Assembly (NCBI GenBank): GCA_965644295.1
Contig: CBFFRP010000242.1
Location: forward strand, 170,401-234,400
Direction of reading: 5' to 3'
DNA length: 64,000 bases
DNA from: Paraphysomonas bandaiensis
Lineage: Eukaryota; Protista; Chrysophyceae
Shown: positions 9,001 through 64,000 of the stretch, piece by piece
Position numbering within the stretch: position 1 is the first letter of the stretch
How the letters are laid out: each line of letters starts with the position of its first letter
Made by a program: the position numbers and the translations under genes
The notes under the pieces: model-generated
Databases searched by the model: none
Told to the model about the DNA's origin: nothing
Seen by the model: the letters and a program-made list of their open reading frames with translations, nothing else

Positions 9001-9035
9001 GTCGCCAAACACAGCCATGAGGCAATACGAAACAT
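1..9035 (-). CDS. Giant secreted/surface protein with fibronectin type III repeats, 'EVQ' repeats, a PA14 domain and filamin-like repeats; runs off the window at its 3' end (at least 2980 aa)
   Basis: Hand translation: exon 1 9035-8978 (MFRIASWLCLATATIINSL, signal-peptide-like), exon 2 8930-8821 (VPSAP...DGGSAIHSYK), exon 3 8773 to <1 in frame at both ends (VEWDTDPG...). FN3 motifs (DNGGSEITRY). PA14 motif at about 700-1080 (GLAASYFDNQWF...ADDGARLYID...IEYRE). Filamin motif DHGDGTYTVHY at the window start. GT-AG introns. Confidence 0.85.
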
Positions 9036-10844
9036 TGACGGCCTTGCAAAGGAAATGTTAATAAACAAGTAATTAAACCAGTAGTAATTACATTCCGCCG
9101 AAAACACACAATCGTTAATCAAGATGATATTCGATGTGGAATATTAATGATGGTTTCAATCCACTTCGAAGTGTAAATATAATTTAAAGGCCCACGTCAA
9201 TGTTGCATGCAAATTACATACGCCAGCGGATTTGCAACGACCTTTTGCTATGAATACATCTGCATCACAAACGACGGATAAAACGGATTTCACAATCTGA
9301 GAGTATCTTGAACGGACACTGTACGATATGACAAAAGTAGTCCAGTTCCGTTGAAAGAGGAGGAGTTTGATGTTACTATTTTGTCGTTTTTTTGTGTTTT
9401 TTGTGCTGCATATATTCTGTATGTATAGCCTTGTACGATTGTTCCTACTTTGGACGACTGCAGAGCGTGAACTGGTTCGAGTTCGTATCTAGATATGGGA
9501 AGAAAACATCCCCAAATGACTTAATGAGAATTATTGGATAGAATGTGACTCCTCATTTTTAATAACTCACTCACTTATTTTACTTTAAAGTGTTCTATTC
9601 GTCAGTAAATAATGGAGGGTGAAACGAATAGTAGGGCTGGCAACAGTGTTGTATCACCCTCTGGCCTGAGAGATACAATGGACAATCTAAATAAACGAGG
9701 TGCACCCTATAGCGCGGATGATTTTCTGCGGGGTACTACCGCGAAAGCGTGCTATGGTTGTGATGTAATCCAGATATCCAAACTGGTGAAACGTAGGGAC
9801 TCAAGGACTTCTGCTCCAGCCCTGTAGTTGTGATATCGGCGGTATCACAACTTCTTGGTCAATCTATAATGTTATTCTACGACATTATATTATACCTTTG
9901 TATAATAGCTAATGGCTATATTATCTAAGTTAATGTAGACGTAGTGTAACGCTTAGATCCTGTCCTGCTGCTGTGTGTAAGTGATAATAAAAACTATACA
10001 ATAGGAATTGCGTCTGCGTTGCTACAATCTGCGACGATGGTATGTAGCGACAATATAGAATATAGTACGCTTATCACGTTTCCGAATATGATGAATTCCC
10101 TTCCACAACTGAATTTCTACCAAGCCGTTGTTGACTTATCGAGAACAATAGCATTTCATACTGAGCAACGAAAGGACCACTTGTATCCCATCACTCCTGA
10201 GAATTCGAGAATATCTTGCGACCAAGTCCGGTGAAGTTCCACTACCTTCGTCATCTCATGGACCCCACAACGACGCCATCAGAAAACCAGCACTGCATCA
10301 AAGCACTATGTTCTTATCCCCATTTAGTCTCAAAAAAATCTATTTTTGACCTGATTTTGTCTCAACAGGGCGCTCATATTAGCACCAGGCAAATATAGAC
10401 ATTCAACTTCTATATTCGGTTCAACAGAAGTTCACTTCTATCTTTATTATGATATTGACAGCCGTATGTATGTGATATCATTATTGTTTATAGTTTATAG
10501 TACACTATTATAGAGAAACCACAATCATGAGCCTAATATCAAGAGCAGATCATCTAACACTCCAAGTTATATACTGCTCTTGAAGATCATAATGAGGTCA
10601 GTGCAAGTGATCCGTCTTCATATCCATGACTTCGAAACAACTTCAAGAATACTACAGGATCGTTTAAGTACCATATCTGATGCTATATAGGTGGTTAGGA
10701 GCAGTGGCACCCAGTTCTTTCAGGGTTTGGGCCATATCGTGCTTCTCAGGATATTGTGTGCCTCATATCATACACACATCTTTCGACCAGGTGCACTTGC
10801 AGAGGATAAGCCTGCTGTATATAAATGTGATGATGATGGTACCT

Positions 10845-36621: not shown

Positions 36622-37082
36622 TGTAGTTGTTCTTAAGAACAACGTATGCTCACACAAAAACAACACTGATCTATAACGTTTTAAAAAGATTTTAAGTGCA
36701 CGCCAGCGGGCTGCTACACTGTTAAGCTCACCAGCGGGTGATGCTCCTCAACTCAGACGCAAACCGCGAAAGAATTTAAATAAATCGTTATTTAAAACGT
36801 GTAATAGAAAAGTGAGTAACATGCTATACAACTCTACAGTAACACACACATACAACATCATGTTCAGCATTTCACTTCAGCACACAACACATCAGATCAG
36901 AAGTATTTTATCCGGTACGTATGTACAGCTTCAACACTCCGTGTATACACTGAAAAAGTAGAAACTGAATATGTAACTGAAAACTGAAAATACAAAAACA
37001 CTCTGTACGTGTTAGAGAGTACAACAGAAGAGTAACATATAATACTACTACCAACGCAGAAAATAACCAGTACTGCGTTACA
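36622..37082 (-). repeat. Gypsy 3' LTR
   Basis: Identical to 42939-43399; adjacent to the PPT. Confidence 0.95.
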
Positions 37083-37319
37083 CTACCCTCTTTCCCCCCA
37101 GCTGGAGAAATTAGATTATGAATACAGACTGTGATTCTTGTATGCAAATACTTAAATCGGCCATAATAAATAGCGTCATTCTAAGTATAAACAGACAAAA
37201 TCAGATTTAAACAGATATTGAGAATAAACTAGATAGACAAGGTGTAGTATTGTAATGGAAATAAAAAATATTGTAAATACTATCATATATAATAGATATA
37301 ATAGAAGAATAAAACCTGT

Positions 37320-40300
37320 TTACAAGAGTATATCAGGAAAACTCTTGCAAAACTCCGCTTCAACAAGCACCATGGTAGACGGATTGAAGTCGAAGCATAG
37401 TCCATAGCAGTAAACATCATAGGCACTCCACTCATAAGTAGTGTCAAATAGTGGACAGTATAAATCTATTCGTAGACGACGTTTGCCTGCCCATCGTTTA
37501 TAACGGCATGATACTACATAATTTGTGAAATAACAATCCGGTAAAGCCAATGCATCGTAAAAATCTGCTCCCCAAGCTCGTAGGTTGATGTACACCTCTT
37601 GGCCTGGTTGAACTCCATCAATCTGCTGTTTCCGCATTCGTAATCGTTTTTCTTTAGCTTCCTTAGCAGAAAATAAAAGCGGAAATAACGCAGGAACGTC
37701 TTTGCAATACTGCTGAAAAGCCCGTGCTGTTGCAAGATCGGAATTGTATGGAATCCACACTTGTGAATCATCACTAAATAAAACGAGAAAATCCATAGTA
37801 GATCTCTTTTCAGGATCTCCCCGATAAGCCACAATCTTTCGCACTTCATACTGGTTATAGTCTACTAAAGCAATGCGGAATGCCTCATCATGAGTACCAA
37901 AAAATGGTTTAAGCCAAGACATATGAAAGACTACCTCAAATCGCATTACAATATGTGTACAGGTGATATCTGCTTTGTACGTAGAGACAACCTCGTATGG
38001 ACCTTTAAATCTAGGATATAGTTTTGACGGTTTAAATTTCGAAGAATTTGGTTGAAATAAAACGAGCTGTCCTGGTTGATATTCCGTAAGTGTCTCCGGA
38101 GGTGTTTTGGATTTTCTCTTTGCTTGGATCTTGCGTTGAACGTCACATGCAATCTCACGTATAGTTCTCAAATTCTGATTTATAAGAGATAAATATTCCG
38201 TAGTATCAACCGAATCTGACACAGCATCTGACAATGTGAAATAAGGTTTGTCTATTGTACCAAATGTAAACTCAAAAGGTGACAATCCCGTTTCACTACT
38301 TATTTCATCATTCAGTATGAACTGGATTACCATATAGCACTCCGGCTCTCCCCAGCAATCTTGCAACCTTTCATCATGTACAAGAGCACTTAGAAATCGT
38401 AATGTCTCTCTATGAGTTCTCTCCACCATGTTAGACTCATGTCTATCTGTCAAAGACATTCGAAAACGCACGCCAAACCATTTTAACAATAACTGAACAA
38501 CCTCTGCTGTAATATTCGAACCTGGGTCTGAAATTAACACTTCCGATATTCCGTACGTCACGAAATAAGAAAACAACGCTCGCGCTACTCCAACTGCCGT
38601 GTAATCAGTTGCTGGATACAGACCAACCAAACGCGATGGCAATTGCTTTACAACATGGATACAACAATGCCCTTTCTTGTCAGGAGGAGACACAGAGAGT
38701 GTGTCAAATCCTACGTAATGTCTACAATGCTCGGAGTCTAAAGCTCTGATAGGTGCCTGCAAGGAAGCACTCATTCCCGCATTAAACTTCTGACAAATGG
38801 GACACCGATCTATGAAATCTTGTATCACCTCTGTGGTTAACTTGTGACCTGGAAATACCTTACTCAGCTTTAACCATGTTCGTTTAACTCCATGGTGACC
38901 TATCCGACCATTGTGTACTAAGTCGAACGCCTCTTTGGGTGAACTAGGTTTTATACCTTGAGCCGCTAGTTCATCTAAAGCTGCAAGTATCTCAGCTGGA
39001 AACGCTGCATAACAAGCTACATCGTCGGTTTCTGAACTCCATTCCCCTACTTGGTTAAGCTCAATAAGCTGATCATCTGGTAGTAAGTCCGTATTTTCAA
39101 ACATAACTACTTCACCACATGCGACACTTTCTTCTGGAAAACATTCCATACAAACGGACAATAACATAACATGAGCCACAGCCGATTCCTGATCCTTACG
39201 AGATAACCAATCAGCAAATCTATTTAACTTTCCCTTGAAGTGAAGCAAGTCGAAATTGAAATTCTGTATAAACATCCGCATGCGTACTATTCTGTCAACA
39301 ACCGAAACTTCCATCCATTTAAGGTTGGCGTGATCAGTCATGATCGTGAACTTTTTACCTCTCAAATAATACGACAAGGCATATACACAAAAGAATATTC
39401 CAAAACACTCCTTGTCAATAGTGGACCACTTCAATGTTGGTTCCGAAAATTTCTTCGACACCATTGCAATTACTTGATAGAATTCTTGACCATTGGCATC
39501 GACGAAAATTTGTAACAACACACCTCCACATGCATAAAACGAAGCATCTGTCATCAAGATCCATCTTAAAGAATAGTCGGGATGATACAGAGTAAGAGAT
39601 TTTAGAATCGCCTCTTTAAATCTACTAAATTCCTCCCTGTAATTTACTTTCCAACAATTCTCATTCCAGTCAAAATTCTTCTTCGTCATGTCATGTAACT
39701 TATGAGTAAGGTCACTATATAACGGAATAAAAGGTTTAAAATATATTGCCGCTCCAAGAAATCTCTGCATTTGTTTCGTCTTGTTTTTCCCTTCTGGAAA
39801 TTCAATTGCAGTTACTGATAATTTTCGGGCCTCAGTTAATTGGTAAGTGTTGTCTTTGCAAAGATAGCCGAAAAATTCCACTGATGAATAACCAAATTTG
39901 CTTTTCGACAATTTTAACACGACATTATAATAAGTACATTTTTTAATGACCTTCTTGAATTTCTCAATAGCATCCTGATAATCATACGCCAACACCAGTA
40001 AGTTGTCAAATATCACCACCATCCACTCTGAGAATTCGTTGAAAATATCAGACACTACATGCATCAAAACTCCACTTGCCGGAGAAACTCCCTCTGGCAT
40101 AAACTTTGGTTCGAACTGGCCCCATGGAGTTTGAACTGACAACAGTGCTGAAACTGATTCATGAAGTCTGATACCATGGAAAGCATTACATATATCTAAA
40201 TCAATGAACACCTTATACCCAGCTGCTTTATGTAATTCTTTTATAACATCTGGTATGGGATAATGCGGACTTTCAATTTCTAAATTAACACGCCTGTAAT

Positions 40301-40568
40301 CACCACATATTCGAATAAAAGGTTTCGTAGCCTTGGGTGCTACTACTATTGGAGATGCATAAGGACTCGTACTTGGACGATAAAAGTATCCACACATCCT
40401 ATTGAACTCCTCCTTAGTACGTTCATATAACATAGGTGGTATCCTTCTCATATTCTTTGGTTTAATTCTATCAGGAATAGTACTTTTCACCTTTAATTTT
40501 AACTCAGGAACATGCTGAATTCCAGTCCATTCTCTAGGAACAAAGACGTCAACTGCATCCTCTCTCAA
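37320..40568 (-). CDS. pol: Gypsy Pol: RT (IFDN active-site variant), RNase H, integrase (HHCC, DDE, GPY), chromodomain and C-terminal extension
   Basis: SPYASPIVVAPK, RICGDYRRVN, DICNAFH, MPEGV, VIFDNLLV, TDAS, TDH, ADWLSR, HNGRIGH...CPIC, ISDPGS, VER, KGPYEV, YEVRKIVAYRG. Confidence 0.95.
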   Translation of the reverse strand: MREDAVDVFVPREWTGIQHVPELKLKVKSTIPDRIKPKNMRRIPPMLYERTKEEFNRMCGYFYRPSTSPYASPIVVAPKATKPFIRICGDYRRVNLEIESPHYPIPDVIKELHKAAGYKVFIDLDICNAFHGIRLHESVSALLSVQTPWGQFEPKFMPEGVSPASGVLMHVVSDIFNEFSEWMVVIFDNLLVLAYDYQDAIEKFKKVIKKCTYYNVVLKLSKSKFGYSSVEFFGYLCKDNTYQLTEARKLSVTAIEFPEGKNKTKQMQRFLGAAIYFKPFIPLYSDLTHKLHDMTKKNFDWNENCWKVNYREEFSRFKEAILKSLTLYHPDYSLRWILMTDASFYACGGVLLQIFVDANGQEFYQVIAMVSKKFSEPTLKWSTIDKECFGIFFCVYALSYYLRGKKFTIMTDHANLKWMEVSVVDRIVRMRMFIQNFNFDLLHFKGKLNRFADWLSRKDQESAVAHVMLLSVCMECFPEESVACGEVVMFENTDLLPDDQLIELNQVGEWSSETDDVACYAAFPAEILAALDELAAQGIKPSSPKEAFDLVHNGRIGHHGVKRTWLKLSKVFPGHKLTTEVIQDFIDRCPICQKFNAGMSASLQAPIRALDSEHCRHYVGFDTLSVSPPDKKGHCCIHVVKQLPSRLVGLYPATDYTAVGVARALFSYFVTYGISEVLISDPGSNITAEVVQLLLKWFGVRFRMSLTDRHESNMVERTHRETLRFLSALVHDERLQDCWGEPECYMVIQFILNDEISSETGLSPFEFTFGTIDKPYFTLSDAVSDSVDTTEYLSLINQNLRTIREIACDVQRKIQAKRKSKTPPETLTEYQPGQLVLFQPNSSKFKPSKLYPRFKGPYEVVSTYKADITCTHIVMRFEVVFHMSWLKPFFGTHDEAFRIALVDYNQYEVRKIVAYRGDPEKRSTMDFLVLFSDDSQVWIPYNSDLATARAFQQYCKDVPALFPLLFSAKEAKEKRLRMRKQQIDGVQPGQEVYINLRAWGADFYDALALPDCYFTNYVVSCRYKRWAGKRRLRIDLYCPLFDTTYEWSAYDVYCYGLCFDFNPSTMVLVEAEFCKSFPDILL

Positions 40569-40574
40569 AACTCT

Positions 40575-41264
40575 TCATATATCAGTTTGTTGAGCGAAAT
40601 CAGGATGTACTTTTGATTCTAGTTCACTAAAATATTTCTCCCTAGCCTCATCCACTGACTGTTCCAAAAATGTCACTAAACTTCCAAAACTACATGGTTC
40701 GGGAATCATATCATCTTCCTCTGACTGTTCCGGAATTGGATTTTCCCAAGGATCACACACTGGTCCTGACGACATATATCTCCTAAGTTCGTCAATGTCT
40801 TCACCAATATTGGCAAGAACTTCTATCTCATTTAAATTAACTGATTGCCCCGCACTCAGTGATGCTTTCTTAATCATATTCATAAATAACTCGGAAAAAT
40901 GCTCACAGATTGCCGGTAATCCTATAATAATATCCTTTGCCAAACCGTCCAGAACATACAGTGAAAGTTGTGCTTTATAGGTCTTACCCTCATCTTCAAA
41001 AGCAATTGTGACAGGAATATATCCTTTAAGTTCAATCTGATGTCCGTCTGCTACTTTAACCCTCAACTTTTTATGTACCATATCTTTTAACAATTTGTCC
41101 CCACACTTCTTAACAAAATTTGATGAAATAAAATTATCCGAAGATGATCCGGAATCAAATAAAACCATTTCCACATTAATCTTATCACCACAATTATTTA
41201 TTATCATTCCTTGCCTATGTACAGCATTGCGAAATCTGCTGGAAGTATCATTGTAATCTCGCAT
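40575..41264 (-). CDS. Gypsy aspartic protease region
   Basis: LFDSGSSSDNFIS, VKVADG, DIIIGL; in frame with both gag and pol and separated from each by a single TGA. Confidence 0.9.
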   Translation of the reverse strand: MRDYNDTSSRFRNAVHRQGMIINNCGDKINVEMVLFDSGSSSDNFISSNFVKKCGDKLLKDMVHKKLRVKVADGHQIELKGYIPVTIAFEDEGKTYKAQLSLYVLDGLAKDIIIGLPAICEHFSELFMNMIKKASLSAGQSVNLNEIEVLANIGEDIDELRRYMSSGPVCDPWENPIPEQSEEDDMIPEPCSFGSLVTFLEQSVDEAREKYFSELESKVHPDFAQQTDI

Positions 41265-41285
41265 AGCCGCTATCAGTGATTGTGC

Positions 41286-42860
41286 TCAAAGGTCATCCAA
41301 AGGATTGTCATCCCCTTGTTGATCCTCTTCAACATCAGGTTGATCTCTGGTAAGAATACGTACATCACCAGGACGCTTTCTATCCCCAGGATATCTTTTC
41401 AATTGAGCTGGAGAATTACTGTATCGACGTTGAGGTGGTGCATTAATACTTGGTTTAGGCATTACTGTTAACCCCACTCTTTCAGTCATCTTCTTAAGAG
41501 CTTCAGTCAAAACAGCTTTATCATGTGAAAATTTACATGACTTATCTTTGCACCCACCATCTTGCGTCAATTCTCTAAAACATGGGGAAGATTTCAATAC
41601 CTCAGCCGCATACAAATCTTCTTCATGTTTCAGCACGTTTTGCTCCTCATCACTCACAGATTCTGAGTCAGAAACTTGTTGCTCAATTTGGTGTAGTCGC
41701 TTATCTACCGCAGAAGATTTTGTTCGAAAATTAAAACGACTTCTGAATTGATTATATTTTAACGACAAATCCCTAGTAATCTTCAACTGCTTAAAGAATT
41801 CTTTCAGAAAAGCTTTTACTGAAGGGAAATTTTCCGACCTCATAAGTCTCTTAGTAGTATCTCTCATACACGCAGGAATAAGACTCATCCACTGTTCCAA
41901 CGAACCACCTCTCTTAGTCGTTACTAAAGGTATACTCTCATCAAGTTTGTTCATCTTAGCAGCCTCCTCCAAGAAATCATACCGCTGATTGAACTTCGTT
42001 TCCAAAATACAAAGATCCTCATCGACTCGACGGAAATCCTCCAACTTGTCCATTGTTACTCTGTACGGCAAACACGATTCAAGCAACATCGAATTAAAAT
42101 CCATCATATCCAAAGGTCTGAACTGATACTTCGCTGCCTCAATAACTTGCGTTACACTTGCATCTATGCATTCCAAAGGTTCAGTATAATCATCAGGATA
42201 TAATTCCATCAACGTAAACCTAATCATTTCCTTAGCCCTGCCTTCCAACAATGTAAACACAGAAGGAATTGGTCCATTATCACGACATTTCTCAAACTCA
42301 GCAATTCGTTCCAAGAAAACCAAAAACCCATCTAAAGTAATTTCCGACAACCTTATCTCCAAGTATGAATCGTCTTCTTTAGTCAACGTAACCTTAGCCT
42401 TCGGTTGACGATCAATTTCACGAAGTGCTTCCTGAATAGTCTGACGTTTAGGTCTGACAGGTGGTCGCTCCTCTTCACTCCTGAGAGCTTGAGTAGCATT
42501 CAATACACCCTCACGCACAGCATTCTCTATATGCGTATGCAACAAGTCAGGGTCAATATACTGCTGCTCACGTCGCTCTATAGTTGCGGCTACAGGCTGT
42601 TCACCATTCCCATGACCATCTGATTTAGACTCTTCAAACGGTATCTCCGAAAGCTGATCAACTTGTATAATTTCTGAATTAGCTCTCGATGACCTTCCAG
42701 ATCTCCTCTGATTGATCTCCTCAAGACTTCGTTGAACATGCTCATTGAACGTCTGTTGCTGATGAAAACGCTGCTCCATATACTCACGTTGCTCACGCAT
42801 ATACTGCATCAAGTCCTCCAGAGTAAGCTCTGTCTTCGCATCGGCTTCTGCAGGCTCCAT
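41286..42860 (-). CDS. gag: Gypsy Gag with a CCCH-type zinc finger
   Basis: First ORF after the 5' LTR; coiled-coil N-terminus; C-x9-C-x4-C-x3-H (CFRELTQDGGCKDKSCKFSH). Confidence 0.85.
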   Translation of the reverse strand: MEPAEADAKTELTLEDLMQYMREQREYMEQRFHQQQTFNEHVQRSLEEINQRRSGRSSRANSEIIQVDQLSEIPFEESKSDGHGNGEQPVAATIERREQQYIDPDLLHTHIENAVREGVLNATQALRSEEERPPVRPKRQTIQEALREIDRQPKAKVTLTKEDDSYLEIRLSEITLDGFLVFLERIAEFEKCRDNGPIPSVFTLLEGRAKEMIRFTLMELYPDDYTEPLECIDASVTQVIEAAKYQFRPLDMMDFNSMLLESCLPYRVTMDKLEDFRRVDEDLCILETKFNQRYDFLEEAAKMNKLDESIPLVTTKRGGSLEQWMSLIPACMRDTTKRLMRSENFPSVKAFLKEFFKQLKITRDLSLKYNQFRSRFNFRTKSSAVDKRLHQIEQQVSDSESVSDEEQNVLKHEEDLYAAEVLKSSPCFRELTQDGGCKDKSCKFSHDKAVLTEALKKMTERVGLTVMPKPSINAPPQRRYSNSPAQLKRYPGDRKRPGDVRILTRDQPDVEEDQQGDDNPLDDL

Positions 42861-42938
42861 GACTCTTAAAACAGTTCAAAGGGCTCAATAACACAATGAA
42901 TGTATAATGTATTGTTCTTATCAACAGAGTAATATTAC

Positions 42939-43399
42939 TGTAGTTGTTCTTAAGAACAACGTATGCTCACACAAAAACAACACTGATCTATAACGTTTTA
43001 AAAAGATTTTAAGTGCACGCCAGCGGGCTGCTACACTGTTAAGCTCACCAGCGGGTGATGCTCCTCAACTCAGACGCAAACCGCGAAAGAATTTAAATAA
43101 ATCGTTATTTAAAACGTGTAATAGAAAAGTGAGTAACATGCTATACAACTCTACAGTAACACACACATACAACATCATGTTCAGCATTTCACTTCAGCAC
43201 ACAACACATCAGATCAGAAGTATTTTATCCGGTACGTATGTACAGCTTCAACACTCCGTGTATACACTGAAAAAGTAGAAACTGAATATGTAACTGAAAA
43301 CTGAAAATACAAAAACACTCTGTACGTGTTAGAGAGTACAACAGAAGAGTAACATATAATACTACTACCAACGCAGAAAATAACCAGTACTGCGTTACA
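42939..43399 (-). repeat. Gypsy 5' LTR
   Basis: Identical to 36622-37082. Confidence 0.95.
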
Positions 43400-53882: not shown

Positions 53883-54626
53883 ATTATTCCACATAGCTTT
53901 CAGTTCATTTTTGCCCCATTTCTTCATTAATCTTTCATCCTAACATAATATAGTACCATATTACTGTACAAAATTTGGTGAAATGACACTCCATATCTAA
54001 GTTAAGCAATATAATGTGTAAAATATTTTAGGAGCTCAATAACTTTTTTGAATGTAATCATTGAATATCTATATTTTGGCTACGCTGCCAAAGCAAAAGT
54101 GAGAAAGTATGACACAGAAATAATTCCTATTTATAAAAGCTACTTATATATAGTGCATATTATTATGTTGTCTCATATCGTCTCAACTGCATACGCTGCG
54201 ACGACGACAATTAGGCGGGCAACTTGTGATACTAGGGTATTCAACCCTGGCTCATTGAGTCCAAACAGCATGTCTACAGCCCTGATTTTGTCTTAATGAA
54301 CTGTAAAGAACATTATCCTTCTAACATTATCCTTAAGACTCTACCAACAGGATTGGTTCTAGCAGAGTCCTGCATCTCAACCTTAGGTTCCTCCTCCGTA
54401 GTAATAATCGTAATGACATGTAACTATACAGCTACTGGCCATAAGCTACACACAACTTCCAAAATTAAGAAACTGCATCTTATTATCGATTATTAGAAAA
54501 AACTACTTAGGATTCCCAGGCCAACAGAAAAGCACAAAGGAATTACCTCTATCCATCTTTCTCTGCCCTACGGTGGCAAATACCGTTCAACACAAAGTTC
54601 CACCTTATTAACCAGCTTTAAGCTCA

Positions 54627-56861
54627 ATGTCCCTATTAAGGGTGTGGATGAGTCATGTCAGTGTGCCTAGGGCCTCTTCTCCCTCTCTTCGGCCACATTT
54701 TGCTGATCACCTCGTCTCCGACAAATCTCTTGTTTTACCACGTTGTACACGTTCCAAGCCTCACTGCCTGGCCTTGCGACTTCTACCCAACCTAACGGCT
54801 TCTGCTAAACCACGTGCCTGCACTAATGCAGCGCTTACCGCATTCATATGCCATCATATCAGTAGACATCATAGTCTCACCTATCGAATTCTACGGTTAC
54901 AACCACTCAAAACGTGGCTCGTGCGAGCAGGTCCACGCAAAAGATCCTCTGGTGCTCTCCATATGGTCACAGACTACTCTCGAACCCACACAACTGAGCT
55001 ACAGGGCTGCCTCCTGATGTCCACACAAAACAACCCAACATGGTTTGTCTGTGGTCTATGCATCCAGCAGGTTACCCCCTCATTCTGTTCACCTATCACT
55101 CCCTCAGCCCATTCCTCTTATTGGACAGACACTGTATTCCGCATACGGTATATTCGGCTACTGTACTACAGTGCCCTACAGGATGTATACCACACAAAAA
55201 CGGTGCTAGCATGCGGAACACCACGTAGCCCCGGACCCCATCAATACCCTACCAACCCACACCCACTCAATCTTGCTGGTTATGAGTATATCACCTATGC
55301 AAGGCCCCAAAGTTCACGCTTAAGTCTCTTGCGTAACAACACTCGGTTCACATACAGATATACACCAACACTCTTTAGAAGCAACTTCGACACAATTTCA
55401 ATGAAACGTGAAACAAATTCCAACACTTCCAGAACCTTCACCCCGAAGTTTGTTCTTCCCCCCTCCTATCAACCAACCAACATTGATGCGCAGATCAATA
55501 ATGCTATCAGAGAACAGAAGAAAGCCAAAGCTGACACTCCCCAGCTACAGCTCCCATCGGTACGCACCTTTCTGGGATGGGAAAATGACCTACCTGTGGG
55601 AGAGTACAAAACACTCGTCCTTACAAACATAAAAGCTGCTGATGATGCCACCTTCCTGGGGATAACACACTACCTTATCCATGAGTTGGGGTTTCCCATT
55701 CAACCCCCTACCCCCCAAGACATCGCTACTTTCAGGGCAGCCAAGGATGCACGAACGTGTTCAGACTTACCTGCTCCCACAGCGAGTAGGGTAGTCCGAG
55801 CGTTCGACCTAGGCAGACCTGGGTACGAAGTCCGACAGGGCATGGGAGCGAATGTTACCGCTGACTCATGTATGTACTCCTCCCCTCTATGCTTTGACCT
55901 CCATGTAGAAACGGGCACATCAGTCGATGACAAAGGCCTCCTTTGGACTGAACGCCGACATGTCCAGATATCACTTTTCCGAACGCCACGAGAACTCTTC
56001 GTGGGTCGTACCAAGGATGAGCCCTCGCTGATACCAGTGGCGGCTATATATGGGCTACATGCAAACTCAGCGCACACCAGACCTGCACATGCCTTTAGGT
56101 TACGAAACACGCTGGATATGCTTCTCCGAACGGGAGGTTTCCCCACGCCACCTCTATACGAAGTATTCTGGACTCTAACACACTATAGAGGCAAGACTCG
56201 AGCCACTGATAAAACACATAGGTTCTATCAGATTCTATTACTCCACGATCCCATTCACGATCAGGATCTAAGAGCTAAATTCTATAAAGCACTCTTCAAT
56301 AATGAAATAGGAGGACATGTCGAAATCAACCTCGGCTCACTCTGTTGTAGAATGGTCAGCAGTGAAACACCCACGCAAAAGCAGTCCAACTGGACACCGT
56401 CTCAAGAACTCTTCCACATCGCTGTCTGCTCTGAAACACTCCTATCTCCCATCCAAGTCTGGCAAGCCTGTGAGGCTATAGGTATCCCATCCACGGACAT
56501 AGAGGACATCATTTGGACCGCCCGCAGCCCACTCACAAGCGGGCGCAAAGAAAAAGAACGCTTAGTTGAACAAACCTACATTTACCTTGACGACAGGAAT
56601 ACCAAGATCAAACTCTGCTGGGAAATCTCACGCGCAGGTATCGTGCCTTTACTGCGCAAAGCTCTGGGTGACGAAACTCTAAGGCTCCTCTATCACACCA
56701 TAGCAGTCCCCCCTGGCCTCCCTACTCAGCGGTTTCTATACGGCCTCCATAAGGCCCCAGACACAGCAACAAACGCCCCTCCCATAATACCGCCTCCAAC
56801 GTCCCTCCAACCCTTCGGCCCAACTATGACACAGCCAGGTTTGATAACCAAGGCTGTGTAG
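54627..56861 (+). CDS. Intronless orphan ORF, possibly ORF1 of a non-LTR retroelement, truncated by the Gypsy LTR at about 56827
   Basis: 744 open codons, C-rich, no recognisable domain; its last codons and stop fall inside the inferred LTR; the true start may be the ATG at about 55401. Confidence 0.4.
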   Translation: MSLLRVWMSHVSVPRASSPSLRPHFADHLVSDKSLVLPRCTRSKPHCLALRLLPNLTASAKPRACTNAALTAFICHHISRHHSLTYRILRLQPLKTWLVRAGPRKRSSGALHMVTDYSRTHTTELQGCLLMSTQNNPTWFVCGLCIQQVTPSFCSPITPSAHSSYWTDTVFRIRYIRLLYYSALQDVYHTKTVLACGTPRSPGPHQYPTNPHPLNLAGYEYITYARPQSSRLSLLRNNTRFTYRYTPTLFRSNFDTISMKRETNSNTSRTFTPKFVLPPSYQPTNIDAQINNAIREQKKAKADTPQLQLPSVRTFLGWENDLPVGEYKTLVLTNIKAADDATFLGITHYLIHELGFPIQPPTPQDIATFRAAKDARTCSDLPAPTASRVVRAFDLGRPGYEVRQGMGANVTADSCMYSSPLCFDLHVETGTSVDDKGLLWTERRHVQISLFRTPRELFVGRTKDEPSLIPVAAIYGLHANSAHTRPAHAFRLRNTLDMLLRTGGFPTPPLYEVFWTLTHYRGKTRATDKTHRFYQILLLHDPIHDQDLRAKFYKALFNNEIGGHVEINLGSLCCRMVSSETPTQKQSNWTPSQELFHIAVCSETLLSPIQVWQACEAIGIPSTDIEDIIWTARSPLTSGRKEKERLVEQTYIYLDDRNTKIKLCWEISRAGIVPLLRKALGDETLRLLYHTIAVPPGLPTQRFLYGLHKAPDTATNAPPIIPPPTSLQPFGPTMTQPGLITKAV

Positions 56862-58177
56862 CAGAAACAAACACAATGAGTTAACCAGAGCTGTAGGTAT
56901 GTCTGATTGCAGGAGAACAGGATGATTATTACTCTAAACAGTATGTCAAGCGTTGTAAGCTTGTACTAGTGACCCCCTCCAAGAATCACCGCGCAAACCC
57001 CACCTCCAGTGAAGTCAGAACACTAGTGTACAAACAGAACAACACTTAACAGAGAACTGAGCTGCAAAGCAATGTAACATAGAACAAGCACAACACACCA
57101 CACACCACACACCACACACCACACTCGCCAGTTTGTAAATTAGCCGTTGAATACTGCGTATTCAGAGTACAGCTACTGTATTACAATGGACCAACATGTG
57201 AGTGTGCAGCATACCGTATGATGTTTTTCCTACATCTACTATCTCAGACTAAGAACCAATGTCCACATCATATACATACATCATATCCATTGCTGCATAA
57301 ACAATGTCTACTACTACAGATCCAGCCGCGGGCTCCACTAAGCCTAAACCTCGCAATCGTAGAGGACGGGGCTCTCTACTACGTAGGTCCAATCGGTATC
57401 GGTATGCCTACCGTGAAAGGGCTGCTGCTAGGCGCATCTGGGAACGCTCCGTTCGATGCCCCGAGGGACAACTTGATGCACATAGGCAACTGTGCAAAGT
57501 TGTTCCTTACTTGCACTCGTCATCGCAAGATGCAAGGGGAGAAGTCTGCCAGTGCGTGTTGGACTTCTACCACAGGTGTGGGATAGTGAATCCCTATGTG
57601 GAAGTCCGGTCTGGCCTAAACATTGCCAACCCGCTGGGCGATAAGCCTGAACAGCAAGGTTTATTCTCCTTACAGGATTTGGAGCCAGGACTGCGTTTCT
57701 GCCTCTACAGCGGTGAAGTGTATACCTCCCGTCCTAGCTGGGGAGCATACATACTTGAGATAGCTAAGGACTTCTATATAGATTCGGAGCGGGACACTCA
57801 TGACATAGGTTACCTTCTGCCGCTGGGGTCCCAAGCTTATTTGGCCCGGGTGCCTCATAATCATGGTAGGTATATAAACACGGTGTATCCCTCTGACCAT
57901 GCTGCTGGCCGGAGCTTCAACTGCGAATTTGTATTAGATGAGTCCGGCTTGGACGTGGTCTGGGTGCAGACCACTCGGGCAGTTGCGGCCGGCGAGGAGC
58001 TGTTGGCAGATTACGGGAAATTGTACCTCCAGTCCTAGTGCTAGTTCTCCAGTAATTTGTAGCGTAATAATGATATGTTTCTGATACTTCTATCGTTTCT
58101 GTCTTCATCCCGTAGTTAGTAGTTTTGCACTTACTATAGACACGTGACTGAGGCATGTGAAATGCCACGTGGTCACA
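56827..58177 (-). repeat. Putative 3' LTR of about 1.35 kb
   Basis: Right edge set by PPT plus TG. Left edge inferred from TG, the terminal hairpin ACACAGCC...GGCTGTGT and disruption of the flanking ORF (alternative edge 56855). The partner LTR is not in the window. Confidence 0.6.
57304..58038 (+). CDS. SET-domain protein (putative lysine methyltransferase), intronless, antisense to pol
   Basis: QGLFSLQDLEPG (motif I), LYSGEV (motif II), GRYINT...FNC (motif III variant), TTRAVAAGEELLADYG (motif IV); Arg-rich NLS-like N-terminus. Confidence 0.9.
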   Translation: MSTTTDPAAGSTKPKPRNRRGRGSLLRRSNRYRYAYRERAAARRIWERSVRCPEGQLDAHRQLCKVVPYLHSSSQDARGEVCQCVLDFYHRCGIVNPYVEVRSGLNIANPLGDKPEQQGLFSLQDLEPGLRFCLYSGEVYTSRPSWGAYILEIAKDFYIDSERDTHDIGYLLPLGSQAYLARVPHNHGRYINTVYPSDHAAGRSFNCEFVLDESGLDVVWVQTTRAVAAGEELLADYGKLYLQS

Positions 58178-58356
58178 TTGCCCCCGCCTCCTTTTTTTTT
58201 TTTTGTTTGATATAAGTATTATGCGAAATGATGGAGACGGGCGTCACTCTGCGACCCACAAATTTCAACGGAACTAAAAATTAGCCATCAAAACGAAGGT
58301 ACAGCAGAGGAGCGTTGGAGTTGGAAGATCGCGTGTGAGTTGATTGGTCCCGTGCT

Positions 58357-61300
58357 CTAAACGGACTCAAGGACTTGAGGGTAGCGTGTAGCCAAGTCCT
58401 TGTCGACGAGTACCATAGTGCTAGTGTCTAGTTCAGGGTGAACGAAACAATGCACGAGGTAGTTGTCATAGCGGTAGGTGCGGAGAGTGAGAAGATCCTT
58501 GACGGATAATACTCTCTTAGAGCTTCGATGATACCAGTGTGTGAACTGGATCGGAGCTACATAGGTCAGTAAGTGGGAGTCTGGTAACTGCAGTCCGTCG
58601 TACCATACGTCGCCGTAAATGCGTAGGTCAACATATGCATGGTCGCCGGGTTTGAACTGAGTGATAGACTGGCGTCGGATGTCCGAGATATATTTCTTGG
58701 CACCCTCCGCTGGATAAATCAGGTGGTAGAGGTACCGTTTGCTGGAACAAAAGTCCGCGTAAGGCACAGAGTCAAAAAGGTCCTTGCTATAAGGCACTTC
58801 TCTGACATCACCATCCTGAAATCTCACAGTAAAAATCAAAGTGGAGCGTGACTCTCTGTCACCCCGATAGTAGAGAATCTTGTCAATGACATGCTGATCC
58901 TGGTCTCGTAGAGCCATGCTGTACGCAGTGTCTCTATCACCTGGAAACAGTTTGACGTCTGTCACTGAAACACGTACCACTTGCCCTGTAGCAAGGTGCT
59001 GACAATCGATGTCATTCTTGTACTGGGTCTTAACAACAAAAGGTCCCATGTATCGATGTGACATCTTGGGATGAACCTTGGCGCCTTTGTCAAATAAAAT
59101 GAAGTCGCCAGGTTGATATCGGTTCTGCTTGTCCGGGTGAACTCCCTCACCAGCGCGTTCACTCGCTAACTGCTGCTGGTAAGTCTTGGAAGCCGCCCGT
59201 AGACCTTCTAACTGTTCATTAAGAGCAGTCAGTCTGGCGTGTGCACGCTCAGGTAAAGTTTGTATATTCATAGTTAAATATTCCAGATCATTAGAGCCAA
59301 AAGTGAGCTCAAAGGGTGAATACCCCGTCTCGGATGAAACTTCTGAATTCAGAATGTATTGAGCGCTGGGTATCCAGCTGGGATCCTCAAAAACATCCTT
59401 TCGTTCTACACGCTTGCTGTTTTCATATACTAGGGCGCGCAAATGTCGGACCACCTCACCGATGATGCGTTCACAACCATTAGCATGCCTGTTGGCTATG
59501 CTGAAGGTGTGTCGGACGCCCATATATTCAGTCAGTTGTTTGAAAAGATCGGAAGTTAGGTCAGGACCCTGATCTGAGATGATAAGATCAGTGTGTCCGT
59601 AGTAACTCCAATACTTCCATACCGTGTTTGCCAAGTTGAGCGCAGTCACTCCTTTGACTGGCTCAAGATAAACTAACTTGGTGAACAGGTTGACTACGAC
59701 ATTAATGTGCGTGTATCCATCAGCACCATGGGGTGTGATTTCTACCGCGTCAATTCCAATAGCACTCCGAGCGCTCGGAGGCTTAAGGTTTCGGACTATA
59801 GGAATCAGCGCTTCTTTCATCGCCAATCTAGTCTTAACACAGTTTGGACACTTCGCAATGAAGTCTTCGACTACTTTGTAAGGAATTCCATGGCCGGGGA
59901 ATTGCTTATTCAGTCGAATCCAAGTGGCTCGCCCACCGAGATGTCCAACTCGGGCATTATGTACTTGTTGCAAGGCATCCTCGGGAGTGACTGAACTTTG
60001 CGCATGAGGAGATACTTCCCTGTCTTCTGGGTTCATAAAATTGCCCAAGAAGTTAAAAAATTCATCCTCAGTGCAGTCCTCTCCAAGGAAGTAGGCATCG
60101 GCATAGTCTTCATCTAAGAATATACCGGACAACGCCGCAACTTGATGCTCCCGAGATAACCAATCGGCTAACCAATTCTTGGCACCCGATATGTGTTTAA
60201 TGCTGAAGTTGAAAGATTGCAAGAAAATTCTCCATCTTGTGATCTTAGGTACTTCAGACGACTCCATCCACAAGAGATTATTGTGGTCAGTCTCTATAGT
60301 GAACTGCTTCCCAATCAAATAGTACGCTAAGTGCTTGACACTGTAGTAAATACCATAAGCTTCTTGCTCTATCGTAGCCCATTTCTGAGCCTGAGCTGAA
60401 AACTTCTTTGATAGGAAGGCAATGGGTTGCAACTGCTCTGTTCCATCTGCGAGAATCTTTTTCTGCAGAAGCACCGAGCCGATTCCTAGCTCACTAGCGT
60501 CAGTACGCAGTGTCCACTCCAAATTGTAGTCTGGGTAGAACAATTCGCAGGAATCTTGCAGGCCTTTTATGAAGCGACGATATTCAGCCTCATAGTCGTG
60601 CCGCCACGTAGTCTTGTCCCAATTGAATTTCGATTTGGTCAAATCTGTGAGATGAGCCACCAAGTCTGAATATCTAGGGGTAAAACTGGAAAAGAACACG
60701 CCCTTGCCAAGCAGAGACCTTGCTTGTTTGGTGTTGGTAGGCATTGGAATTTTGCCTAGGGCTTCCTTCTTCTCAGGATTGACTTCATAGGATTTGTGTC
60801 TGCATACGTATCCGAAGAAGTCTACTTTTCTAAATCCAAGCCAACTCTTTGGCATTTTCAGTTTGAGATTCCTCTCGATGCATCTGTCAATCACTTTCTC
60901 GAATTTCTGATACGCATCTTGAGGGTCGTTGGCCAATATCAACATGTTGTCAAATATTACAATGGCCCAGTCAGAAAAATCTTCAAATATTTCCCTGACT
61001 ACCTCTTGCAGAATTCCAGTAGCCGGCGCAATACCTTCTGGCATGAACTTTGGCGCATATTGGCCCCATGGCGTCTGGATAGAAAGCCTCTCTGATGTTT
61101 CTTCCGCTAGAGGTATCTGATGGAAAGCGTTGGTCAAGTCAATGTCCATATACAATGGGAAATTGATGATCTTGTCCAATTCATGCTTGACGTTGGGAAT
61201 TGTATAATTACCCACTTGCATGTGCTTGTTGATGTTAACATAATCCCCGCAGAATCGGATATAAGGTGGAGTAGCCTTGGGAGCAACCACCAAGCATGAA

Positions 61301-61491
61301 GCCCAAGGAGATCTGCTCTTCTGGTAAAAATAACCACATAGTCTCCTGAACTCCTTTTCGGATGCTTCCCAGAGCTTAGGGTTGATCGGCCTGGCTCTGG
61401 GTTTCATTCTTTCAGGTAAAGTTTCTTTCCACTTAAGAGTCAAAGGGTAGACGGAGGACTTTCCTGGCTGCTCGTGCAAGTATTTTGTCAC
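58357..61491 (-). CDS. pol: Gypsy Pol: RT (IFDN variant), RNase H, integrase, chromodomain and C-terminal extension; N-terminally truncated
   Basis: SPWASCLVVAPK, RFCGDY, DLTNAFHQI, MPEGI, VIFDNMLI, TDAS, TDH, ADWLSR, HNARVGH...CPNC, ISDQG, CER, MGPFVV, HVIDKILYYRG. Confidence 0.95.
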   Translation of the reverse strand: MTKYLHEQPGKSSVYPLTLKWKETLPERMKPRARPINPKLWEASEKEFRRLCGYFYQKSRSPWASCLVVAPKATPPYIRFCGDYVNINKHMQVGNYTIPNVKHELDKIINFPLYMDIDLTNAFHQIPLAEETSERLSIQTPWGQYAPKFMPEGIAPATGILQEVVREIFEDFSDWAIVIFDNMLILANDPQDAYQKFEKVIDRCIERNLKLKMPKSWLGFRKVDFFGYVCRHKSYEVNPEKKEALGKIPMPTNTKQARSLLGKGVFFSSFTPRYSDLVAHLTDLTKSKFNWDKTTWRHDYEAEYRRFIKGLQDSCELFYPDYNLEWTLRTDASELGIGSVLLQKKILADGTEQLQPIAFLSKKFSAQAQKWATIEQEAYGIYYSVKHLAYYLIGKQFTIETDHNNLLWMESSEVPKITRWRIFLQSFNFSIKHISGAKNWLADWLSREHQVAALSGIFLDEDYADAYFLGEDCTEDEFFNFLGNFMNPEDREVSPHAQSSVTPEDALQQVHNARVGHLGGRATWIRLNKQFPGHGIPYKVVEDFIAKCPNCVKTRLAMKEALIPIVRNLKPPSARSAIGIDAVEITPHGADGYTHINVVVNLFTKLVYLEPVKGVTALNLANTVWKYWSYYGHTDLIISDQGPDLTSDLFKQLTEYMGVRHTFSIANRHANGCERIIGEVVRHLRALVYENSKRVERKDVFEDPSWIPSAQYILNSEVSSETGYSPFELTFGSNDLEYLTMNIQTLPERAHARLTALNEQLEGLRAASKTYQQQLASERAGEGVHPDKQNRYQPGDFILFDKGAKVHPKMSHRYMGPFVVKTQYKNDIDCQHLATGQVVRVSVTDVKLFPGDRDTAYSMALRDQDQHVIDKILYYRGDRESRSTLIFTVRFQDGDVREVPYSKDLFDSVPYADFCSSKRYLYHLIYPAEGAKKYISDIRRQSITQFKPGDHAYVDLRIYGDVWYDGLQLPDSHLLTYVAPIQFTHWYHRSSKRVLSVKDLLTLRTYRYDNYLVHCFVHPELDTSTMVLVDKDLATRYPQVLESV

Positions 61492-61498
61492 GCATACC

Positions 61499-64000
61499 TG
61501 TAGTTACTGTTATACGTGGAGTTATACGGTGTTATACTGCGGTACTCTAGGTAGCATGCTGTTGTACTTTCATTTTCAGTTTATTTAGTATACATTGCGG
61601 TTACTGTATTCTTGAAGGGATATAAGTCCCGTATATGTACAAGTATGATACTGTAAACTGTAGATGATTCACAGCAAGATAGAGTGTTGTATGATTTCAC
61701 TTTTTCTTTACACGTTTTAACGTAATTTAATTCATTCTATACTCGCGGTTTGCTTGTGTTAGGAGGCAGTTTCACCGGTTTGGTGTTCTGGACAGTGTAT
61801 TCTCGGTTTGGGAAGCACTTTAAATTCATATAAAACGTTGTAAACACGGTCTTTCTCATCAGAAAGATTACAGTATTAATACTTTAGTCGGATAGAAAGA
61901 AACATTGTTTATTTATATTATTGTCGACTATGAGTTCGGAAGAAGAGGTTTCAAAGATTATGGAGTTCCTTCAGCAGCGGTTTGCTGAACAAAATGAACA
62001 GTTTGCTCAACAAAAGCAGCGGTTTGCTGAACAACAAGAGCAGCTGAACAAGCGTTTTGAGTCCATCGATCTTCATTTCGAAATGTTCGAACAAAGATTG
62101 CAGCAGTTGGAGTCTCGACGTTCCTCAAGACGAGCGATTCCAGCTAATTCAGATCTACTTCAGAACAGAACCGATGAGAACTGTATTGTGCAGAATGTTG
62201 TCAATGATATGTTGGAATTTGTTGAGCAGCAGGACGTTCAGTCAGAGTCATTCGAGGCTGAGATTTTTGTTGATAATTCTCAAGTTGTTATGCAGCATGT
62301 TGCCATTGATCCTGAAATGGTAATTCCAAATTCCTTTGGAAAAGAGACTACTGCCAATGATGCTACAGATGTAATCGAGCGCATGTCAGTCGTACCTTTT
62401 TCAGTGTTCAATTATTCGGTGTTTGAATATTCCTTGTTTATGCTGATAAAGCAAGATGCAGCTTGTTACGTTTTTCAGTTTCTTACGTTGAACAAGAGTT
62501 TGAGTTTATTGCTTTCAAATCTTGTGTTTATTGCGGAGCATGGGCCAGGGCCGCCATTAATTCAGTAAGTTCAATTCCAAATCCAGCAAGTGTCTTTTGT
62601 TTCAAAGTTCATCTTATTATTTATGATGATGCAATATTTATCATGGTTTTATTCATTTTATTTCGGAATGGATTGAGGTTGTTGTGAGCCTTACCGTTGT
62701 GATGGGAGTTACAATATGGGAGTTCTGAGTTTTTGAGAAGTGTGATCCATATTCAATAATGTCTAGTTAAAATTATGCTCAATAGTCCTGTGTGATACTG
62801 ACTACTACGAGAGAATAATTCGGTTTTAAGTTCAATGTATAAGAATGGGTTTCAGTGAATTTATCAAGTTTCAATGAATGACAGTATTGTCTGAGATTGG
62901 TAAAAAGTCTGCAAAGAGTTGTTCAATATCAATGGTATGGTTTCAACATCAATGGCAAGCAATTATTGTTATAGTTTTGCAAGGGTCATGTATGGTTTGG
63001 ATAAGTTTTGCAATACTATATGATTCATATACGAAAGTTTAATTTCAGAGGAAGTAAACAGTTTTTAATGAACGCGATTGCCTCTATGTGAACAGAATGT
63101 AAATTTTGATGTTGTAATTTCAGTATGAGGAAAGTATATTTGGAGCAATATGTTTTCAGTGTGCTTTGCATTTTGTATTAAAGAGAATGAATAGAAACAG
63201 GAAGGAGTTGGAGATATTCATTGTCTTGTTGATGCTTATAAAATGGTTACTCAGTTTTTTTGGATCTGCAATGGGATTGAATTTGAATATATGGTATCCA
63301 TAAATGCAACGAATTAACTTGTCTAAATTCATGGTTAGTTGTTGATTGAAAGTTGTTCGAAATTGAAGTTTCTGTTACGTTGAAGTGAATATGGTTCAGT
63401 GATACAACATGTCAATGAAATTTTGAAAACTTTGTCGCTGGTATTTTTCAATTGTTTGACTGTATTATGCATCGGGTATGAGATCGATGGTTAAGTGTCA
63501 ATGATATTTGGAGGTATGGTGTTGATAATACTATTGCATGCGAAAGAATTATATATGCTAGTGATGGTTAACTTCGAGACTAAAAATGGGAGTTATTACT
63601 TTGCGAGCTTGTTGTTATTTCAGTTGATATTTCTATTGTTGGATTCTTTTCAATGAGATTGCGTTGAGTGGATCATTCTATTGTTTACAATATTATAATG
63701 TTGTATCTGAGGGAAATCGTTACGTATGGTTACTGAAATATAAGACCAGTGCACTATGTTCGTATATATTCAGAATGAGATGAATGATGTTTTGATTGGG
63801 GTGGTTATTGATTGGTCCGGTGATATTTTCATTAATCAAATATTGTTTCGTTCTAAAATCGAGAGGATGAATTACAATTATTGTACAAAATAAGATATGT
63901 CAAAGTAGAGTTTGGTGCACAAATACATGGATGATGGTGGTTGATTACTTTCAGATTCAGTTGTCAAAATGGGTTGTAAGACACTTACGGTTTCCAGTTG
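61499..64000 (+). mobile_element. Third element of the Gypsy lineage (5' LTR, truncated gag, AT-rich non-coding interior) inserted into the second; probably non-autonomous
   Basis: LTR 61499-61872 (TGTAG...TTACA) shares U5 motifs with the 461-bp LTR (cacgttttaa, tcgcggtttgc, acagtgta, gcactt, taaaacgtt); gag N-terminus resembles 41286-42860; no long ORF after 62568. Confidence 0.75.
61930..62568 (+). pseudogene. Truncated gag-like ORF
   Basis: IMEFLQQRFAEQ...LESRRSSRRA aligns by eye with LMQYMREQREYMEQRF...RRSGRSSRA; similarity is lost downstream. Confidence 0.6.

Follow-up and report, generated by a model that had tools for sequence, protein, structure and literature searches.

In a window of 64,000 nucleotides of Paraphysomonas bandaiensis DNA (the whole stretch analysed; contig CBFFRP010000242.1, positions 170,401 to 234,400 of the forward strand), a Ty3/gypsy retrotransposon carries, inside its long terminal repeat (LTR) and antisense to its own coding region, an intact gene for a protein of the SET fold. 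The structural claim, that a gypsy lineage houses an intact, conserved antisense SET-fold gene within its LTR, is solid. As a whole, the findings are best explained by an LTR-borne SET gene whose product would be an active methyltransferase, working in trans and favouring the element family, and we consider this explanation probable. The features that carry the argument are given below in window coordinates.

56825 to 58177, minus strand: 3' LTR, present at either end of full-length copies and at about 25 genomic places
57304 to 58038, plus strand: SET-fold open reading frame (ORF), intronless and intact, 244 amino acids (aa), antisense to the element and wholly within the LTR
58178 to 58204, minus strand: polypurine tract (PPT; A13 G GAGGCGGGGG CAA) abutting the LTR, read directly and kept in the C378 and C599 copies
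58357 to 61491, minus strand: pol ORF of 1044 aa (reverse transcriptase [RT], RNase H, integrase, and C-terminal tail; Pfam), N-terminally truncated
58360 to 59154, minus strand: 265-aa C-terminal tail of the integrase, conserved across the lineage (62% mean column identity in an alignment of 20 homologues)

The SET gene lies within the LTR

The 3' LTR of this minus-strand element is 1353 bp long, and its termini in element sense, 5'-TGTGACC...GTCATA-3', were read together with 4-bp target site duplications (TSDs) in the C378 and C599 copies. An earlier interpretation made from the letters alone (the sequence-only reading) had put the left end at 56827 or 56830; the copy alignments and TSDs move it to 56825 (...GTCATA). 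The other boundary, at 58177, where the PPT on the minus strand is followed by TG, stands as first described, as does the 244-aa ORF, which is a listed open frame without stop codons. Also as proposed, the ORF is antisense to a gypsy pol, whose protein matches RVT_1 (residues 100 to 228), RT_RNaseH (321 to 427), Integrase_H2C2 (505 to 554), and rve (580 to 667). Two RNase H models match the window pol, the domain order is that of Ty3/gypsy, and full-length homologues measure about 1300 to 1370 aa. A sister element elsewhere in the window has 461-bp LTRs (36622 to 37082 and 42939 to 43399; 100% identical) with no SET gene, in agreement with the sequence-only reading, and its pol is 38% identical to that of the SET-bearing element.

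The search for further genomic copies that the sequence-only reading had called for was made with a 1351-bp LTR query against the window's own 62.5-Mb assembly. It matched about 25 places, so that the sequence is multicopy and forms both LTRs of full elements. Pairs of LTRs lie 7.5 to 7.6 kb apart in C378, C645, C153, and C226 (7553 bp in C378), and alignment to C378 and C70 extends over window positions 56825 to 61448, with the first 1.35 kb recurring at the far end of the element. The stretch holding the ORF is repeated at both ends of the full-length copies C378, C70, and C599, which places the ORF inside the LTR as claimed. Four-base-pair duplications, CGGT on both sides of the C378 element and ATGG on both sides of the C599 element, identify these as true insertions. 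Six LTRs keep an intact 244-aa frame, namely that of the window, both of C70, and one each in C589, C218, and C496, with proteins 93 to 94% identical to the window's; all six are joined to internal element sequence.

The arrangement recurs in other families and is under selection

Besides the window family, the genome holds at least three further SET families. In the C599 family, the LTRs are 1432 bp long and 98.4% identical to each other, and the SET and pol proteins are 53 to 57% and 88% identical, respectively, to the window's. In the C656 family, with 72% identity in pol and 40% in SET, the start of the LTR is repeated 7369 bp away in the same geometry. The noncoding parts of the LTR no longer align between families. 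Three marine-metagenome contigs (L029, L031, and L032, two of them from PRJEB4352) carry a C599-type SET gene convergent with the end of pol, and in four more, from seawater and other metagenomes (L039, L041, L045, and L046), a SET gene whose product is 30 to 36% identical adjoins an antisense pol C terminus at 36 to 46% identity. Because the same layout recurs across families and metagenome contigs, the gene is not a one-off capture. Public sequencing runs containing the LTR came from coded organisms and from marine and hydrothermal-vent metagenomes.

A profile search of 1.84 billion protein cluster representatives gave 275 matches at E ≤ 1e-3 and 34 at E ≤ 1e-30, the closest being mostly 230 to 330 aa long. 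Judged by these matches, the SET proteins of the LTR appear as a distinct, moderately large family and not as the general SET superfamily. The nearest SET matches in the genome that are not part of the repeat are 27 to 28% identical, partial, and situated inside very long open frames.

The ratio of nonsynonymous to synonymous substitution rates (dN/dS), which the sequence-only reading had proposed to compute across copies, speaks against a single capture evolving neutrally. Between families it is 0.10 to 0.13, as obtained from C599 and an MMETSP transcript (dN 0.23, dS 1.8 to 2.4), the least saturated of the between-family pairs, synonymous sites being saturated between families. Between close subfamilies, it is 0.40 to 0.55: the window and its sister subfamily differ by 28 to 31 nucleotides, giving 0.40 to 0.48 (NG86) or 0.55 (maximum likelihood), and the divergence of the ORF (3.8 to 4.2%) about equals that of the noncoding LTR (3.4 to 4.1%). 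Pairs within the young subfamily give values near 1 from only 2 to 9 differences. The open frame and the conserved motifs persist down to 28% amino acid identity. Paired pol and SET identities run 88 and 55%, 72 and 40%, and about 45 and 31%, so that SET tracks pol at roughly three to four times its rate of change, a pattern consistent with vertical inheritance along with the element and weaker constraint on SET. The SET gene is a multicopy component of the element, maintained by purifying selection, that has co-diverged with pol in at least three families and in metagenomic relatives.

One further pair of SET-bearing LTRs, 92% identical and 5537 bp apart, was seen in C338 (L035, C338:266001-276000). 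Each of its SET frames contains a TAG, no pol was detectable between the two LTRs, and the pair is probably a nonautonomous derivative.

The encoded protein is predicted to adopt a SET fold

Profile and structure comparisons bore out the SET identity of the protein. They were based on a set of 51 sequences in which the relatives are only 21 to 64% identical to the window protein. The Pfam SET model (PF00856) matches 46 of the 51 at E ≤ 0.01, with a best E value of 1.1e-13. A profile of the set found 104 chains in the PDB at E ≤ 0.01; all 60 of those listed, down to E 5e-9, are SET enzymes, among them LegAS4, EHMT2, KMT2C, KMT5A, and EZH2. An AlphaFold (AF2) model built on the 51-relative alignment reached a pLDDT of 93.4 and a pTM of 0.85, replacing a poor one made from only eight relatives (pLDDT 53.5). 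It shows a long basic helix at residues 22 to 50, a helical insert at 168 to 180, and a beta core that ends seven residues after GEELLADYG. In a Foldseek search with the model, the listed top 50 were all SET enzymes (E about 1e-7, probability 1), and the ESM Atlas matches were all SET clusters. VIA-align gave a Z of 11.8 and an rmsd of 2.2 Å over 115 residues against yeast Set1/COMPASS, with MLL1/3/4, SET7/9, SETD8, and ATXR5 tied with Set1 within 1 Z (Z 11 to 12), a tie that permits no assignment to a substrate class. In the model, the LTR-encoded protein consists of a minimal SET domain with a basic helix on its N-terminal side.

Nearly invariant over the 51 sequences are C133, Y135, and G137 in motif II, Y190 and N192 in motif III, and G230, E232, and Y237 in motif IV. 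The corresponding window motifs are CLYSGE (YxG, II), GRYINT (III), and GEELLADYG (IV, with the catalytic Tyr). Of the SET motifs I to IV that had been read from the sequence, YxG and ELLADYG are present, and motif I proved degenerate. The N terminus is Arg-rich as described, but the Cys and His residues also ascribed to it are not conserved: only C82 is invariant in close relatives, and among the 51 no N-terminal Cys or His reaches 90% conservation, which leaves no pre-SET zinc cluster.

Evidence for a transcription unit inside the LTR

Expression of the SET gene as its own polyadenylated mRNA of about 0.9 kb, starting and ending inside the LTR, is supported but not proven. The MMETSP contig of a relative (L037) comprises 915 nucleotides, with a 104-nucleotide leader, a complete 237-aa ORF 51% identical to the window's, and a terminal A-run that starts 14 nucleotides past a AATAATGA element. 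A Logan contig (L042), likewise of 915 nucleotides, begins 104 nucleotides before the ATG and maps to 8470 to 9384 inside the C599 LTR (8395 to 9826). The AT-rich AATAATGA element follows the stop codon in the window (58066 to 58073), in L037, and in L042; L043 has a variant of it. By analogy, the transcription unit of the window gene would begin near 57200 and end near 58090 without leaving the LTR; its predicted parts are as follows.

57200 to 57303, plus strand: predicted SET leader and promoter-proximal region, by analogy to the L037 and L042 starts
58039 to 58090, plus strand: predicted SET 3' untranslated region, with AATAATGA at 58066 to 58073 as the putative poly(A) signal

If the mRNA does start and end there, each LTR amounts to a gene complete in itself. 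Four public runs supplied contigs that were placed on 56000 to 61900. In a poly(A) metatranscriptome, contig depth was 40 to 89 over the LTR versus 0 to 6 over pol, a contrast that is weak because it rests on contig depths. The same placements gave a candidate landmark for the RNA of the opposite, element-sense strand.

56907, minus strand: candidate poly(A) site of the element sense RNA (R/U5 boundary), from one contig of run X15 with 22 T residues before 56907 on the plus strand

With this single contig as a lead only, U5 would be 56825 to 56906, about 82 nucleotides. The SET ORF would then belong to U3, since it lies upstream of the candidate sense poly(A) site. From its place in the LTR, the gene is put by reverse transcription at both ends of each new copy. 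The sequence-only reading had instead recognized U5 by a hairpin block and a motif shared within the lineage. The block folds no better than shuffled sequences (z -1.05), and the motif (GGGTTTGC) has just two occurrences in the window, neither of them in the sister LTR.

Two observations concern the region upstream of the SET gene. A GGTGT/GT-rich simple repeat at 57085 to 57126 separates the predicted SET start region from the R/U5 part of the LTR and may belong to a bidirectional promoter; L043 has a CA-rich run, the same repeat type on the opposite strand, upstream of its SET ORF. One metatranscriptome contig skips the 50 bases from 57230 to 57279, which have GT..AG ends on the minus strand, and this may mark a small intron in the sense RNA of the element or a DNA deletion variant.

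SET-deleted LTRs have transposed

Three deletion forms of the LTR, each of which destroys the SET ORF, were found at several insertions apiece.

About 57738 to 58023 missing: LTR deletion variant A, in C196 and in both LTRs of C153
About 57584 to 57790 missing: LTR deletion variant B, in C564, C120, both LTRs of C226, and C36
57325 to 57625 missing (301 bp, SET codons about 8 to 108): LTR deletion variant C, in both LTRs of C378, both of C645, and the 3' LTR of C589

Several of these are matching LTR pairs with TSDs, and the variant C joint (57324 to 57626) also occurs in public sequencing runs. SET-deleted LTR variants have therefore transposed, and the SET gene is dispensable in cis. The spread of the gene by LTRs, predicted in the sequence-only reading, was upheld insofar as placement in the LTR copies the gene to both ends; the claim that every solo LTR would carry it on was not, as the only solo LTR identified, C120, is of form B with a broken ORF. 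In C589 (C589:2028-10940), a full, SET-intact 5' LTR is paired with a form C 3' LTR, although LTRs should be identical at insertion, and the mismatch suggests recombination between copies after insertion or an assembly join.

How the SET protein might act, and whether the integrase reads its mark

In the explanation that we favour, the SET protein would be an active S-adenosylmethionine (SAM)-dependent lysine methyltransferase, as its motifs and modelled fold suggest. It would be supplied in trans, as the recurrence of variants A, B, and C at several loci, some as matching LTR pairs, leads us to propose; it could enter the nucleus by way of its basic helix and methylate a histone or another chromatin-bound protein. 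The element family might then be favoured, most likely through permissive LTR chromatin or through chromatin marked for integration. Counter-silencing and integration-site marking, both put forward in the sequence-only reading, are inference. Overall, what that reading had observed was partly confirmed, and what it made of the observation was partly supported.

The sequence-only reading had further placed a chromodomain in the integrase, next to the SET gene, as a reader beside a writer. None was detected. The integrase tail had no Pfam match to PF00385 at E ≤ 10, neither the sequence (phmmer) nor a 20-sequence profile matched a chromodomain in the PDB, and PF00385 is annotated in none of 27 pol homologues. 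A language-model search of the tail gave subthreshold leads (0.86 to 0.89) to Chromo and SH3_Tf2-1 clusters. A fuller version of the proposal makes the LTR a mobile, self-contained methyltransferase gene in a loop with the integrase: SET would write a lysine mark on the chromatin near existing copies, and the conserved C-terminal domain of the integrase would read it and direct insertions there. We regard this loop as improbable. If it were true, the family would build and target its own "safe-haven" chromatin, and solo LTRs with intact ORFs would remain as working enzyme genes.

Weighing the explanations

Several findings tell against an active enzyme that benefits its element. The window protein alone scores 22.1 bits with PF00856, versus a cut-off of 22.4 (E 2e-4). 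Motif III reads NT rather than NH, as the sequence-only reading had observed: the window's GRYINT, invariant in eight close relatives, keeps N192 and has Thr in place of His. Motif I is QQG in the window subfamily versus GKG in the family consensus, a departure from strict GxG. The public-run contigs speak to the presence of the sequence, and to neither strand nor level. Weak constraint or LTR exchange could explain why SET is 53 to 57% identical between two families that share 88% in pol. Intact LTRs do not outnumber the SET-deleted variants, and a benefit from the gene is not required for spread. Finally, in L040 (752 to 4537), a distant SET relative, 29 to 32% identical to the window's, has an antisense RT of Copia type (RVT_2, E 1e-49) at a distance of 1.6 kb in place of a gypsy pol, and is either a chance neighbour or a sign of a second element class with a SET gene.

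The motif departures and the score just below the cut-off count towards a pseudo-enzyme, a protein that keeps the fold and the peptide or histone groove, transfers no methyl group, and acts as an adaptor or decoy; it might, for instance, sit on a histone tail or titrate away a host silencing factor. The motif III His is the residue mutated to make SET7/9 and SUV39H1 catalytically dead. In addition, the PR-domain model PF21549 also matches 22 of the 51 relatives, and proteins with weak or no activity occur in the PRDM family. We nonetheless hold a pseudo-enzyme to be unlikely: over the 51 sequences there is hardly any variation in the YxG motif, in the Asn that contacts SAM, or in the catalytic Tyr of ELxxDY, and the family profile aligns GRYINT with TRYINFS of LegAS4, which reads NF at the same place, so that a solved SET enzyme also does without the motif III His. 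An active enzyme might, on the other hand, restrain its own element by putting a repressive mark (H3K9 or H4K20 type) on LTR chromatin or target sites, thereby limiting copy number or steering insertions into silent, repeat-rich DNA. This would agree with a window copy nested between two other repeat families, with SETD8, EHMT2, and ATXR5 among the tied structural and profile matches, and with SET-deleted variants that spread at least as well as intact ones. However, nested repeats are commonplace at contig ends, whatever the element; the best structural matches incline to the H3K4 type (Set1/MLL, SET7/9, and LegAS4), though Z is tied within 1; and the integrase tail has no detected reader domain. 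Restraint strikes us as quite unlikely.

Two other explanations give the protein no role. Antisense regulation is known for Ty1, and the antisense unit here overlaps the 3' end of the genomic RNA, so the functional entity might be an antisense RNA that regulates the sense RNA by double-stranded RNA and RNA interference or by transcriptional interference, the ORF being incidental. Such regulation has also been discussed for plant antisense ORFs (PMC7264820). It is very improbable as an account of a frame that is kept open down to 28 to 33% amino acid identity with a dN/dS of at most 0.13 between families, that conserves residues at enzyme positions, and whose fold is confidently predicted. Still harder to sustain, and already largely refuted, is the idea of a passenger, a host SET gene captured once and decaying neutrally. 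Many copies are deleted or have stop codons, as a passenger would, and the young-subfamily dN/dS near 1 points the same way, on few differences. Yet the ORF is found in elements whose pol C termini are only 36 to 46% identical, at saturated dS and a dN/dS of about 0.1, and the genome's nearest nonrepeat SET matches reach only 27 to 28% identity, in partial matches. An LTR-borne SET enzyme acting in trans to the benefit of its family thus remains our preferred reading.

Genomic surroundings of the element and its host

The window copy is nested among other repeats, which flank it as follows.

61486 to 64000, no strand assigned: high-copy LTR element, unrelated to the SET element, which it adjoins and cuts short; the start of over 40 genomic matches falls at about 61486
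54555 to 56824, no strand assigned: another repeat family, the insertion target on the left flank, with at least 13 copies at 98 to 100% and a 744-aa ORF

The SET element was inserted at the right end of the left-flank repeat. Its window copy is 5'-truncated, and its 5' LTR is not visible because homology to sister copies stops at 61448, the other element abuts, and the contig ends at window position 64000. Contigs from three public runs end at 61486 as loose ends, and public-run contigs under another organism label continue past 56825 into different sequence. The left-flank repeat family also has older relatives at 72 to 81%; its 744-aa ORF (54627 to 56861, plus strand) matched no Pfam domain.

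The RT catalytic motif reads IFDN instead of YxDD (window 60935 to 60970, minus strand), as it does in all 24 homologues covering the site (P0171 to P0196). The same non-YxDD motif had been recorded by the sequence-only reading in the sister element at 36622 to 43399. LTR pairs in the lineage are 98 to 100% identical despite the IFDN motif, and this identity indicates that the SET-bearing Ty3/gypsy lineage was recently active. Directly 3' of the 5' LTR, where a tRNA primer-binding site is expected, stands a 12-bp palindrome, GTAATTAATTAC (L036 1922 to 1933, which is C599; also in C378). A search for it made with self-priming in mind found no copy in the window or the LTR.

The 62.5-Mb assembly contains 15 matches to the silicon-transporter family, situated in seven long open frames and all above the Pfam cut-off, and no match to the light-harvesting family PF00504. 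From this combination the host looks like a colourless, nonphotosynthetic marine protist that forms silica; a diatom, which the transporters alone would suggest, was rejected for want of any light-harvesting match.

Comparison with known systems

A full-text search of the literature returned no report of an LTR with a SET gene in it, of a retrotransposon lineage that has long kept a histone-type lysine methyltransferase, or of a complete antisense gene housed in an LTR, doubled with each insertion, and left behind in solo LTRs; papers on diatom retrotransposons do not mention SET. That retroelements take up chromatin readers (chromodomains) and, in rare cases, genes for DNA methylation is established. 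Should the SET protein prove active, transposons could write chromatin marks as well as read them, and the element would offer a handle on how mobile elements manipulate host silencing in a little-studied group of protists. The SET-in-LTR family is common in ocean metagenomes, and its compact protein of about 240 aa, with an unusual NT motif, lends itself to biochemistry.

Among captured epigenetic genes, a DNA methyltransferase (DNMT) in eukaryotic retrotransposons and a methyl-CpG-binding domain (MBD) in an arthropod retrotransposon are attributed to de Mendoza et al. (2018, 2019) in a later survey (10.1101/2021.11.30.470311). They share with the present case a mobile element carrying a host-type epigenetic writer or reader and the idea of evading or steering silencing. 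The same survey, which covers gene models that join transposable-element and chromatin domains, counts SET among the "fusions" with SETMAR as the validated example, and describes no separate antisense SET gene within an LTR (10.1101/2021.11.30.470311). SETMAR resembles the window element in linking a SET domain physically to a mobile-element protein, the mariner transposase, but it belongs to the host, as a gene in which a DNA transposase was domesticated, whereas the SET gene here is carried by an active retroelement lineage.

Small SET proteins encoded by parasites offer a second comparison. Legionella LegAS4/RomA and chlorovirus vSET act on host histones, and LegAS4 is the best full-length profile match of the family (about 24% identity), at Foldseek ranks 27 and 34 among the listed top 50. 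The carriers differ, being a bacterial effector and a giant virus, and LegAS4 has ankyrin and other regions in addition. In plants, LTR retrotransposons such as Grande (gene23), RIRE2, and Retand have antisense ORFs between pol and the 3' LTR (PMC7264820, PMC11963269), and these show no clear similarity to known proteins (PMC7264820). Like the SET gene, the plant ORFs are conserved, lie on the 3' side of pol, have their own promoter in the case of Grande, and are suspected of a regulatory role; unlike it, they lie outside the LTR.

In its placement, the SET gene is most readily compared with the superantigen (sag) ORF of mouse mammary tumour virus (MMTV), a gene within the U3 of a retroviral LTR. 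In both, a complete protein gene is contained in the LTR and doubled at the two ends, and the sag product acts on the host and not in the chemistry of replication. The MMTV gene, however, is in sense orientation, belongs to a vertebrate retrovirus, and encodes an immune modulator that is not an enzyme, whereas the gene described here is antisense, has a SET-fold product, and appears to have a transcript start and a poly(A) site of its own, both within the LTR.

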